Shown here: positions 8,168-33,510 of the stretch, in pieces
Layout: every line of letters starts with the position of its first letter
How positions within the stretch are numbered: position 1 is the stretch's first letter
Assembly (NCBI GenBank): GCA_002269645.1
Contig: NIVC01000254.1
Span: 62,001 to 126,000 of the forward strand
Reading direction: 5' to 3'
DNA length: 64,000 bases
DNA from: Macrostomum lignano
Lineage: Eukaryota
The notes under the pieces: generated by a model
What the model was told of the DNA's origin: nothing
Databases searched by the model: none
The model's input: only the letters and a program-made list of their open reading frames with translations
Program-made: the position numbers and the translations under genes

Positions 8168-11100
8168 ATGAACTTTCAAATCGTCACTAAGATAGTGTCG
8201 GTAATTGCTATCCTTTTCTCCAAAACTGTCCGGGTCACTGGTAAGTTGTCATAAAACATATCGTCTATGCGTACTTTTTTAGCATTTGCGACTCTTTGAC
8301 TTTAAGTTAAACTCTAATAATTTTAATTGAATAGTAGGCTATGCTCAACAATTAAATAAAGCTCGATTACTATACTATTATTGTAGATTGATTCATATAA
8401 TTAAATCGACATTTGCGAAAATATTTGAGCTACCGGGATACTAATTTATTTGTGCCACATATTTAACAGCGTCATGAGCTTCTAGTTCAGTCAGAAAAGC
8501 AAATTAATATTTAACTTATTGTTTAGTTTATAGCTAGGCTAGCTATTAAACGGGCCTCATAGTTTTGTAGTAACTGTACACATCACGAAAATCATATAGC
8601 GGACTAAAGAATTTTTAATTTATAGATTTAATTATTTATTAAGATTACCACAATACTAATCACATCCATATTTGATGTTTCTCGCTGTGATATCATTATA
8701 TTACTGTACTGCCTAGGATGTTCACCTTGCTTAATCTTTTAACTTTTTGTGACAGACAAAATACCTTTGAATTCCCTTCAGGTACCTGTCCGAGCAGAGA
8801 ATTATTTTCATCAACCGGGGTTGTAGCCTGCCCAGACAGCGCGAACTCCAGTAGTCTGTACTCGAGCAACCTGGACGCTCGCTGGGTGATACGAACACCT
8901 GGAATTAAGGTTATTCGCTTTTTAAAATTAGACCTAGAAGAATGCTGCGACAAAATTCGTATATATGATGGTACCGACATGAATATAACAGACTATGAAC
9001 GGTTCAGGCTTTCACACAGAGCTGACGCTAGCTCGGAGTTCTGGGTGACAGGGACAACTATTATTCGCTTTACATCTGACAGATCGATTGTGAGGACTGG
9101 CTTTCGACTTCAGTTCGATACGACGCTTCTAGAGAGTTCAAAGCTAAGAGGTTGGACACATTAACCCTTAATAAATAGATTGTATTTCATACCTAGTTGG
9201 CTCTTCTCACTGTGCTAATGATATATACATGTACATGCAACATGCTAGCTAAGTTGATAACATCAATTTAATATCACCCCTAATCCCCGTTTTATATTAT
9301 TACTCGATTTGCCAGCTGCTACAGAGCTCATTAAGCAACGGAGTGGATATCGGAAAAGCCATACAAGCTTTGGGGCACAGTTATATCCAAATGACTTTAA
9401 ACTAAGTTGGAGTATCAACATTCCAAGTGGATATTATATGACGTTAAAGTTCCTTAAATTTGAAACCCAATCCAGCTACGACTATCTCAGATTGTATTCT
9501 GGCACTGTACCAAACGTATCAAGCTATGTTTTGAACGAATTTTCGGGAAATCGAACAATCAAAACACTAAAGCTTCGGCACAGCGTAACTCTCGTCTTTA
9601 CGACTAACAGCTGGTCAACTAGCACAGGATTTATTTTTGAGTTTACTGTCATCGAAGAAAGTGAGCATTTGATTCTTTGTTTATGCAGTAGGTGTATTAG
9701 CAAAAAAATCAATTAATTCTTCCACATAAATGCAGGCTTCTATAAGAATATTTCTACTAAACAGCCTTGGTAGAAATACGCTCGTATTAGTCTGAATTTT
9801 TTGCATGGTATTTAGAAAGCTTTGTGCTTACGAAAAATTTATAGCCTCACATTTATACGTGAATATGGATTTTCATTTGCACATCTTTAGAAAATAAAAT
9901 ATAGAACGCATAAACATAGAAATATAGAATATAGAAATATAGAATATAGAAATATAGAAATATAGAATAAAATATCTCTACATATAAAATCAAAACGTAG
10001 AATATAGAAAATAGTTTTAAACAGCAGTCGCTCTATAGGTGAGACAACAATAGAACCATAAAAATATTTAATTTATTTTTTTCAACCAAGTAGGTGCTTG
10101 AAAATATACTCGTACAATTGTATTCTACTCGACACAGCGCCCAGCTCCTGAAATTTTCAGACTCGTGTTCTGAAAAACTGCTATTATCCGATCAAGAAGG
10201 TACCGTGATCAGTGGCAGTACTGAAAATAATAATAAATCATTATCAGTAATAAACCAAACCGACAATCTAAAAATAGACCGGTGCTGGTTAATTAATTCC
10301 AGTCTGAGCGAAATTGCAATCATTCACTTCCATAGTCTGGTCTTGGAGCCATACTGCGGTTTCATTTACATTTATGGGAACACAGATGTTCCATTGGAAG
10401 ACAGGATGCTGTATCGACTTACAAGTGCAAGTAACGCTGCAGAGTCTGAGTTTCAGCTCCATAGTGCGACGCTTATCCGATTCAAAGCAAACGCAACTGG
10501 ATACAAGAAAGCTTCGCTTGAGTTTTCATTCAGAAGGCAAAGCATAAGAAGAATATTGTTTCTGAATGGTAAGTACAGGAGCGAAGTTGAACAATTTGTT
10601 TTGATTAGGTCTGCTCCACGTTATTATAATGTCACGATATATATATATATATATATTTATATATATATATATAGCGACGCAGAGAGAAGCACAGACAAAG
10701 AGACATCTAGCTAGTCTTTGCGCGGACGCGTTCGCAGAACAACCGAGAAGGGCAAGTCATAGCGGACTGGGGGCTGAGTCCGATGGCCTGCAAGTTAGTC
10801 AAAAACGTATCATATAGCGTCACAGTTCGGCCTTGTCCACGGCGCAGGCGCTCAGTGGGCTGATGCAGGAGAGCCAGCGCCAGAGGATTTTGCTCGCCGC
10901 GGCCGTAGCTTCTTAGGCTTAAGTGTGGAACTAAATGTGGAACTCCAAATGTCACGATATAACAATATAAACATATCTATAGAGATGCCTATTTATTTAT
11001 TTAGCATTTATATCACAGAAACCGACTCGAAAAATATTTTTAAAAATTGCTTGCAAGTGAGAACATGAAGCACTGGCTGTAAAAATATTAAACATTATTG

Positions 11101-32600: not shown

Positions 32601-33510
32601 TGGTCAGAAGAGAGTGAGATCTACTTCACGGCTACATCCTACAACACGTGCTCAAGTGCACGGCACCAGTGTCAGTTAAGGTTCGACAACGGTAGTACTC
32701 AGTTTTTCGAGTCAGTTAGCTTAGTGAGTACGATGCATTCGATTAATTTATTTAACTTATATATCTCCTCCTTATAAACGCGAGTACAACACTATCTGTT
32801 TCAGACACTGAATTACACAACCTACGTTTGCAATACCTCTACTCTGCAAACTGGCTTTGTTTTGCCGGCGAACACATCGATTGTTGAGGGTCACGAAATC
32901 GCGTGTCTGCTTTCTGGAGGCGATTTTGAGGTTTATAAGTTTAAAGAGCCTCAAAATGGTAAGCAAAAAATTAGAAAAATTTGGAATACCTCTCTGTCTG
33001 TCTGTCTGTCTGTCTGTCTGTCTGTCTGTCTGTCTGTCTGTCTGTCTGTCTGTCTGTCTGTCTGTCTGTCTGTCTGTCTGTCTTTCTGTCCGTCTATCTT
33101 TTTGCCACATGGCTAAAAGCTGTCAAATTAATTACATAAAAATTCAGTTGGATTTTTTGGCATTTCTCCCACGAGTAAAAGTCTCCAACAACAAGTGGAG
33201 CTGATACTGAGCATATCCGCTTCAATAGTTCCAATACTTTTTGTTGCTGCCTCCATTCTGACGGCAGTCTTGGTTGGGCTGAAGCTACATGTAGGTGTAC
33301 ATCAGGAACCTGTGTCACCAACGCAGGCTTCACCGAAAACTAACGAAATTCATCCGGAACCTTCGGTCTCTGAAGAGGCTTCGATTCAAGTAAAAAATCC
33401 TGTGGTAAGTCAACTTTAATGCTTTTTAAAAATCTCAGTATTTTTTTTACTGATTTGGTCAATAAATTTTTTTTCAGTACACCGACAACATTGAAGTGTA
33501 TGTTACGTAA
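29697..33510 (+). CDS. CUB-domain type I transmembrane receptor-like gene, paralogue 3 (2 CUB, 4 Cys-containing membrane-proximal domains, TM, tail), intact; first exon uncertain
   Basis: Phase-compatible exons 29697-30059, 30288-30638, 31084-31265, 31361-31523, 31601-31764, 31836-31974, 32056-32225, 32309-32450, 32557-32723, 32805-32958, 33148-33404, 33478-33510. CUB motifs YSNNENVQWII...FSTESSYDKVSIY...FTSDGS...GI. Exon 2 (ASTELIKQSSGWRTSH) matches gene 1 exon 3 (AATELIKQRSGYRKSH). TM LILSISASIVPILFVAASILTAVLVGL. Tail ...KNPV-YTDNIEVYVT*. Confidence 0.85.
30065..30169. repeat. (AGT)n microsatellite, about 35 units, just after a splice donor
   Basis: Directly visible; begins 5 nt into the intron. 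Confidence 0.97.
32992..33090. repeat. (CTGT)n microsatellite, intronic
   Basis: Directly visible. Confidence 0.97.

Follow-up and report, generated by a model that had tools for sequence, protein, structure and literature searches.

How do receptor-like genes with differing extracellular parts come to share one short protein ending, and what would such an ending do? The question is raised by a 64,000-nucleotide stretch of the Macrostomum lignano genome (assembly GCA_002269645.1, contig NIVC01000254.1, positions 62,001 to 126,000 of the forward strand; hereafter the window), in which positions 8,168 to 33,510 hold three tandem genes, here numbered 1 to 3. A preliminary description had presented them as CUB-domain receptors that each close with a 33-nucleotide exon encoding VYVT and a stop codon. 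We find that they belong to a small family in which the last codons of every member lie on a micro-exon carrying a conserved tyrosine motif. In the anatomy of these proteins and the family-wide conservation of the micro-exon we have high confidence. The best explanation overall is an array of type I CUB/immunoglobulin (Ig)-like receptors with a micro-exon-encoded putative phosphotyrosine dock, to which we give an even chance of being correct.

The terminal micro-exon and its conservation

The three terminal exons lie where they had been placed, and their sequences are exactly as first read, with AG acceptors and phase 0.

13591-13623, plus strand: terminal micro-exon of gene 1; 33 nt, phase 0, pyrimidine-rich AG acceptor; GISLTGVYVT-stop (GGC ATC AGT CTT ACA GGT GTT TAT GTC ACC TGA)
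23348-23380, plus strand: terminal micro-exon of gene 2; 33 nt, phase 0, pyrimidine-rich AG acceptor; DSHVASVYVT-stop (GAT TCC CAC GTT GCC AGC GTG TAC GTC ACC TAA)
33478-33510, plus strand: terminal micro-exon of gene 3; 33 nt, phase 0, pyrimidine-rich AG acceptor; YTDNIEVYVT-stop (TAC ACC GAC AAC ATT GAA GTG TAT GTT ACG TAA)
13319-13354, plus strand: probable remnant of a terminal exon duplicate, in intron 9 of gene 1; RFLPESCV-stop-VT-stop

The phase of the last intron was borne out by the models of genes 1 and 3, and the gene 2 donor is also in phase 0. The partner donors follow ...YENS in gene 1 (13031, GTATGT) and gene 2 (23283, GTAAGT) and ...KNPV in gene 3 (33404, GTAAGT). The gene 3 micro-exon is the C-terminus of the UniProt models A0A1I8HM97 (P0001) and A0A1I8GSI3 (P0022), which both end YTDNIEVYVT. 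A copy of gene 1 on contig NIVC01000293.1 (L002) carries the gene 1 micro-exon without any change. In a six-frame translation of the whole window, VYVT-stop occurs three times, against a mean of 0.06 in block-shuffled sequence, and is confined to the three terminal exons on the plus strand: a chance origin of these endings is ruled out. The 36-nt relic in intron 9 follows an AG; its counterpart in L002 (24535-24570, phase 0) reads RFLPESCVYVT-stop, and in the window the TAT codon has become TAG.

Three full-length paralogues extend the comparison, their terminal exons having been found by mapping annotated proteins onto their loci.

P0002: terminal exon of 33 nt, phase 0, PDDSTGVYVT-stop
P0013: terminal exon of 27 nt, phase 0, PASEVYLN-stop
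P0015: terminal exon of 39 nt, phase 0, NQVSEVYVTLPN-stop (ending ...EVYVTLPN-stop)

Because the BOX15_Mlig annotation was made from RNA sequencing data with StringTie, TACO and TransDecoder (PMC5730564), these three terminal splices are transcript-supported. As a rule for the family, 'exactly 33 nt, VYVT-stop' does not hold: the exons measure 27, 33 or 39 nt, and the endings include VYLN-stop and VYVTLPN-stop. The element common to all members is [S/G/E]-V-Y-[V/L]-[T/N] near the C-terminus.

Among the five exons that encode VYVT, the four third codon positions are all variable (GTT/GTG, TAT/TAC, GTC/GTT, ACC/ACG), the eight first and second positions are all invariant, and the codons before VYVT, six in number, cannot be aligned. 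The VYVT codons thus differ only synonymously next to unalignable neighbours, which argues for purifying selection on the peptide. Gene conversion of the shared ending is ruled out, since every synonymous position differs and the six upstream codons are unrelated; the restriction of nucleotide similarity between loci to a few exons is further evidence against it.

Duplicate copies point to constraint. Gene 1 and its L002 copy, which is intact, are 0.86% diverged in exons, with no indels, and 1.68% diverged in introns, with 76 gap positions, a sequence comparison indicating that gene 1 is under constraint. The two copies differ by 8 synonymous and 12 nonsynonymous codons, small counts without a replacement excess, and 12 of the 21 coding differences fall in the exon of CUB-like module 4. 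The copies of P0013 show 14 differences, again a small count with no replacement excess, and P0002 against its duplicate gives a ratio of nonsynonymous to synonymous divergence (dN/dS) of 0.29. Overall, dN/dS between duplicates is about 0.3-0.7 and gives no hint of diversifying selection. At L002 1-3026, upstream of P0013, the P0002-like copy is interrupted by an in-frame stop within the exon that encodes residues 310-358, and its dS from P0002 is about 0.10; this array member may thus be losing one of its copies.

Domain architecture and the tandem array

Gene models were built by linking open stretches at the best frame-compatible GT/AG pairs. Of the three co-oriented paralogues of one layout proposed at the outset, genes 1 and 3 gave clean models, whereas gene 2 is damaged and is not an intact four-CUB gene.

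8168..13623, plus strand: gene 1, 809 residues, 10 exons, all junctions GT-AG, frame open
8168-8240, 8782-9150, 9316-9660, 10161-10568, 11298-11639, plus strand: gene 1 exons 1-5
11937-12085, 12172-12331, 12404-12567, 12645-13031, 13591-13623, plus strand: gene 1 exons 6-10
29510..33510, plus strand: gene 3, 787 residues, 13 exons, all junctions GT-AG
29510-29588, 29697-30059, 30288-30638, 31084-31265, 31361-31523, 31601-31764, 31836-31974, plus strand: gene 3 exons 1-7
32056-32225, 32309-32450, 32557-32723, 32805-32958, 33148-33404, 33478-33510, plus strand: gene 3 exons 8-13

Gene 1 encodes a signal peptide, CUB1, CUB2, two divergent CUB-like modules, two Ig-like domains, a transmembrane helix and a 39-residue tail ending ...GEYENS/GISLTGVYVT-stop (the slash marks the last exon junction). 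Each of its four CUB-type modules occupies one exon, the two Ig-like domains take four, and the transmembrane helix and tail share exon 9. Gene 3 encodes a signal peptide, two CUB domains, four Ig-like domains in two pairs, a transmembrane helix and a 48-residue tail ending ...VKNPV/YTDNIEVYVT-stop; two exons serve the CUB domains, eight the four Ig-like domains and one the transmembrane segment and tail. Exon phases are regular: CUB exons are 1-1, an Ig-like domain is a pair of 1-0 and 0-1 exons, and the transmembrane exon is 1-0. Both proteins show a single hydrophobic transmembrane peak, a tail of 39-48 residues with 2-4 tyrosines, and an ectodomain with 7-11 N-glycosylation sequons and 15-19 cysteines.

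Gene 3 is partly represented by the models P0001 and P0022; both match it at or close to 100% identity and reproduce several of its junctions as well as its last exon. They omit several gene 3 exons, including the transmembrane exon, with the terminal micro-exon still in frame; these may be prediction artefacts or real isoforms lacking the transmembrane helix. An (AGT)35 microsatellite (30065-30171) begins 6 nt past the donor of the gene 3 CUB1 exon and would be translated as poly-Ser were that donor missed. (GACA)n arrays lie in intron 11 of gene 3 (32975-33113) and again at 60819-61243.

Gene 2 was examined by aligning the gene 1 protein to 16.5-24 kb of the window and inspecting the result, which located the following elements.

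17337..23380, plus strand: gene 2, open exons with all junctions GT-AG
17337-17388, plus strand: open exon, candidate signal peptide
18086-18448, plus strand: open exon, CUB1
22121-22269, 22368-22527, 22600-22763, 22841-22994, plus strand: exons of the Ig-like pair
23075-23283, plus strand: transmembrane and tail exon, followed by the terminal exon 23348-23380
about 18492-18869, 19056-19433, 19510-19698 plus 20741-21011, plus strand: dead exons of CUB2-4

The dead exons contain three stop codons (TGA at 18546-8, TAA at 18669-71, TAG at 19272-4) and a frameshift near 20890, and the CUB4 exon is broken by a repeat insertion of about 1 kb (19699-20745). An inverted copy of this repeat, 73-85% identical, lies between genes 2 and 3 (26725-27620). 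A frame change near 23030 is an ordinary phase-1 intron common to other members. Because CUB exons are of phase 1-1, skipping the three dead exons preserves the frame, and the open exons join into an intact 427-residue reading frame with one CUB domain. All five lesions are confined to these skippable exons, 44% of the coding length (chance about 0.02). Outside them the reading frame, 1284 nt, is open and the splice sites are intact. From this clustering in the sequence, gene 2 would be a recently formed pseudogene or, alternatively, a gene shortened by the loss of three CUB exons. The strong divergence of ectodomains and tails first claimed does not hold between genes 1 and 2: their CUB1 domains are 67% identical, and ahead of the last exon each tail has the sequence ...Y-x-x-x-x-Y-E-N-S.

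CUB is the one Pfam domain recognised in genes 1 and 3. Against a Pfam gathering threshold of 21.4 bits (PF00431), CUB1 and CUB2 score 26.0 bits (E 1.2e-5) and 37.7 bits (E 2.8e-9) in gene 1, and 26.6 bits (E 7.7e-6) and 35.2 bits (E 1.7e-8) in gene 3; the whole-protein matches have E values of 6e-15 and 6e-12, respectively. Pfam recognises neither module 3 nor module 4 of gene 1. In a tblastn search within the window they resemble CUB1 (28.8%, E 4.6e-6) and CUB2 (24.8%, E 1.8e-5), and therefore appear to derive from a divergent duplication of the CUB pair. The count of four CUB domains in gene 1 thus stands for CUB1 and CUB2 by the Pfam threshold, whereas CUB3 and CUB4 are known by internal similarity only. 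Sequence matches in the PDB were limited to generic CUB domains of C1r, PCPE-1 and MASP (E about 2e-6), and the Pfam scan of the proteins gave no FA58C, MAM or LDLa domain.

The cysteine-containing unit that follows has no Pfam match (ig, I-set, V-set or C2-set) even at E<=10, and its profile no PDB sequence match at E<=1. An AlphaFold2 model computed from eight aligned units reached a predicted local distance difference test score (pLDDT) of 76.7 and a predicted template modelling score of 0.72, with a pLDDT of 82-96 in the second domain. Foldseek against the PDB returned 1475 matches at E<=1e-3, the best being two-domain Fab chains (E about 1e-6); TM-scores are merely 0.3-0.45 because the inter-domain geometry differs. 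On the strength of the model and these matches, therefore, the cysteine-containing domains are predicted to be paired Ig-like beta-sandwiches of non-canonical sequence. The pair has the invariant motif C-P-x-V-R-H-R-C-E-L-R, its profile matches gene 3 twice, and UniProt labels one gene 3 model 'Ig-like domain-containing'. The transmembrane segment is relatively conserved; in gene 1, P0002 and P0013 it includes the polar run S-S-T.

We searched 1.84 billion cluster representatives with a profile of the Ig-like pair. The ten true matches were all from M. lignano; the two weakest of the twelve matches listed were a bacterial repeat protein and one unrelated protein. A word-indexed protein search with an eight-sequence profile returned five models, all from M. 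lignano. The same kind of search with full-length gene 1 returned nothing at E<=1e-3 and also missed the 35%-identical P0013, so that it is uninformative on distribution. The expectation of a lineage-specific family is therefore upheld across these representatives. So is that of an undescribed one: the matches are named just 'hypothetical protein BOX15_Mlig...' or 'CUB domain-containing protein', and a literature search found no paper on these Mlig genes or on a VYVT cytoplasmic tail, M. lignano papers on CUB proteins being irrelevant (adhesion). The Mlig identifiers are absent from the supplements of PMC5816591, PMC5946080 and PMC5730564.

The family comprises about six loci, and pairwise identity among members is 25-40%. 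The full-length paralogues are P0002 (759 residues, 2 CUB + 4 Ig-like), P0013 (817 residues, 4 CUB + 2 Ig-like) and P0015 (592 residues, 2 CUB + 2 Ig-like). The proposed combination of a variable ectodomain with a conserved tail end is thus supported and widened, the arrangements being 4 CUB + 2 Ig-like, 2+4, 2+2 and possibly 1+2. The tails, of 37-59 residues with no domain detected, agree with the earlier view of the receptors as kinase-less.

L002 is collinear with positions 1-14388 of the window at 97-98% identity. Along a single strand it carries first a P0002-like gene, then P0013 and then the copy of gene 1, at which no gene is annotated. A further locus, L001, holds P0002 followed by a P0013-like gene. 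Given the collinearity of L002, the array runs P0002, P0013, gene 1, gene 2, gene 3, and the last three of these five genes lie in the window. The sixth member, P0015, stands alone at a separate locus (L003). At about 8460-8570 of L001, 1.5 kb upstream of P0002, lies what is left of a CUB2-type exon (ESTEILRQRSGVRTSH..., with two stops), which suggests a further degraded member at the head of the array. As judged from sequence, the family appears to be real, undescribed and restricted to M. lignano, and to lie within ordinary receptor biology.

Possible roles of the tail motif

The family consists of type I proteins that begin with a signal peptide and a CUB pair (duplicated in some members) and continue with one or two non-canonical Ig-like pairs, one transmembrane helix and a non-catalytic tail of 37-59 residues. 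Phase-1 introns bound the ectodomain modules, so that modules can be gained or lost in frame, which accounts for the architectures 4+2, 2+4, 2+2 and possibly 1+2. In every member a separate phase-0 micro-exon holds the last 8-12 codons, which specify a short linear motif under purifying selection. In all six tails a valine precedes the terminal tyrosine and a second tyrosine lies 7-15 residues upstream. Src/Abl-type kinases favour an aliphatic residue at position -1. The ectodomain may bind a ligand or partner outside the cell. It is plausible that the terminal tyrosine with its aliphatic -1 residue would be phosphorylated by kinases of this type and that, together with the second tyrosine, it would then recruit an SH2-type adaptor. 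A candidate pYxN site (Grb2-type, Asn at Y+2) occurs in genes 1 and 2 within the YENS encoded by the penultimate exon, and in P0013 within VYLN. In P0015 the terminal motif lies three residues from the end, which favours an internal element centred on the tyrosine over one that relies on the carboxy-terminus. That it serves specifically as a phosphotyrosine dock is nevertheless a tentative proposal, to which we assign somewhat less than an even chance.

Several points weigh against the phosphotyrosine-dock interpretation. In four of the six members the chain ends just two residues past the tyrosine, a short stretch for most SH2 domains, and pYxN is absent at the terminal tyrosine of members other than P0013. 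Of the consensus sequences tried (the immunoreceptor tyrosine-based inhibitory, activation and switch motifs, ITIM, ITAM and ITSM, and the sorting signal YxxPhi), none fits all members. Relative to ITIM ([SIVL]xYxx[IVL]) and ITAM (YxxL/I-x6-12-YxxL/I), the tails have G, S or E at position -2, and S, N or H at +3 of the upstream tyrosine. The databases searched contain neither an annotated transcript nor a protein model for gene 1 or gene 2, and the database models of gene 3 skip exons, perhaps as prediction artefacts. Other candidate readings of the motif were rejected as well. PDZ ligands of class I, II or III end in a hydrophobic residue, with the motif at a set distance from the carboxy-terminus; here the final residue is T or N and the P0015 motif is displaced three residues inward, which makes this reading unlikely. 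Neither a 14-3-3 mode III nor an LC3-interacting region (LIR) reading fits all members.

The micro-exon could instead be a trafficking signal that sets surface location and residence: its tyrosine might direct sorting or endocytosis, or it might serve at the C-terminus as a signal for export from the endoplasmic reticulum. A short conserved element of tyrosine and aliphatic residues does end a short tail, it is the sole element conserved across all tails, and Y-V-T-L of P0015 matches YxxPhi. YVTL is found in P0015 alone among the family tails, however: the hydrophobic Y+3 residue for the mu-subunit of adaptor protein (AP) complexes is missing in the four members that stop two residues past the tyrosine, and P0013 reads Y-L-N-stop. 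We regard this explanation as doubtful. A role as co-receptors or auxiliary subunits similar to NETO, SOL-1, LEV-10 or neuropilin, with the tail end tethering the protein to a PDZ-type scaffold, would suit multi-CUB type I proteins, as those with short tails are typically of this kind, and would suit the relatively conserved transmembrane segment and its S-S-T run. It is distinctly unlikely given the T or N at the last position, the inward shift of the P0015 motif (PDZ ligands differ in this respect) and the lack of LDLa, FA58C or MAM in the Pfam scan. A flatworm-private module is unlikely too: here, phase-1-shuffled receptors sharing a V-Y-V-T end would be read by a dedicated, possibly lineage-specific adaptor and would act in a Macrostomum recognition system (microbial, mating or tissue).

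Recognition receptors in the immune, allorecognition or adhesion sense, diversifying their ectodomains on a fixed signalling tail, were the reading first advanced. The tandem array, the lineage restriction, the varying module number, the decaying member and the concentration of differences between the gene 1 copies in one CUB-like exon are consistent with it. That step found no support in a family of about six loci with dN/dS of about 0.3-0.7; P0002 and its duplicate sit at the low end, gene 1 and P0013 show no replacement excess in their small counts, the tails match neither ITIM nor ITAM, and we know of no allorecognition in M. lignano. It is highly unlikely. There is only a very slight chance that the cluster is decaying, that is, that the window genes are unexpressed pseudogenes or near-pseudogenes and the shared ending merely historical. 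The five lesions of gene 2, the missing annotation of genes 1 and 2 and the in-frame stop in the P0002-like copy of L002 would fit this; yet the reading frames of genes 1 and 3 are uninterrupted and their splice sites intact, the exons of gene 1 are half as diverged as its introns and free of indels between copies, the gene 2 lesions are all in skippable exons, and the VYVT codons vary at synonymous sites only.

Among known systems, the closest functional analogues would be CUB receptors and co-receptors without a kinase domain (CDCP1, neuropilin, NETO, SOL-1, LEV-10). CDCP1 (Trask) is likewise a type I protein with a CUB-like ectodomain, one transmembrane helix and a non-catalytic tail, whose phosphotyrosines dock Src-family kinases and PKC-delta. 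There is no detectable sequence relationship, however (the Pfam CDCP1 CUB model gives E 0.1, below cut-off), and CDCP1 lacks the Ig-like pair and has a longer tail with other tyrosine motifs and no terminal micro-exon motif. Neuropilins share the N-terminal CUB pair followed by further modules, one transmembrane helix and a short tail ending in a conserved adaptor motif, in their case the C-terminal SEA-COOH that binds GIPC; they differ in having two FA58C domains, a MAM domain and a true PDZ ligand where the present family has Ig-like pairs and tails ending VYVT. NETO1/2, SOL-1 and LEV-10 are also multi-CUB, single-pass proteins with short tails, and C. elegans SOL-1 has four CUB domains, a number matched by P0013 and, if its two divergent CUB-like modules are counted, by gene 1. 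In contrast to NETO and LEV-10, the M. lignano proteins have no LDLa match and extra Ig-like pairs, and no sequence-level orthology was found.

In genomic style, clustered Ig-superfamily receptors with short tail exons would be the nearest analogues. Hydractinia Alr and vertebrate KIR, LILR and SIRP genes resemble the family in tandem clustering, module-number variation, pseudogenes, very short tail exons and tyrosine motifs. Those are large polymorphic families with canonical ITIM or ITAM and V-set or I-set domains, whereas the M. lignano family is small, its motifs do not fit and its Ig-like domains match no Pfam model. Membership in each of the compared families fails on a defining feature.

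The family bears on no long-standing open question and does not conflict with known receptor biology. It is a clean case of architecture change via symmetric phase-1 exons, with gene 2 caught losing three CUB exons, and a small cluster with one tyrosine-motif exon of 27-39 nt is a tractable experimental entry point. M. lignano is used for studies of regeneration, stem cells and sexual selection and is, to our knowledge, the sole flatworm with routine transgenesis.

Surroundings of the array

The rest of the window contains mobile-element sequence and neighbouring genes.

887-5440: DIRS-like retroelement, with open reading frames 1476-2564, 2408-4267 and 4165-5409 on the minus strand; reverse transcriptase, tyrosine-recombinase SAM-like domain, SAP-domain reading frame
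15163-16700, plus strand: reverse-transcriptase fragment (Pfam RVT_1), between genes 1 and 2
40883-42597, plus strand: neighbouring gene, Cation_efflux (ZnT-type) transporter
46727-47758, plus strand: neighbouring gene, Swi3/TIPIN replication-fork protection protein
48429-52811, minus strand: uninterrupted open reading frame of 1461 residues, no Pfam match
58053-60593, minus strand: KY-like protein with an Ig-like_KY domain

The 4.5-kb DIRS-like insertion is missing from the 97-98% identical L002 and is therefore polymorphic or recent. Minisatellites are very abundant in the window.

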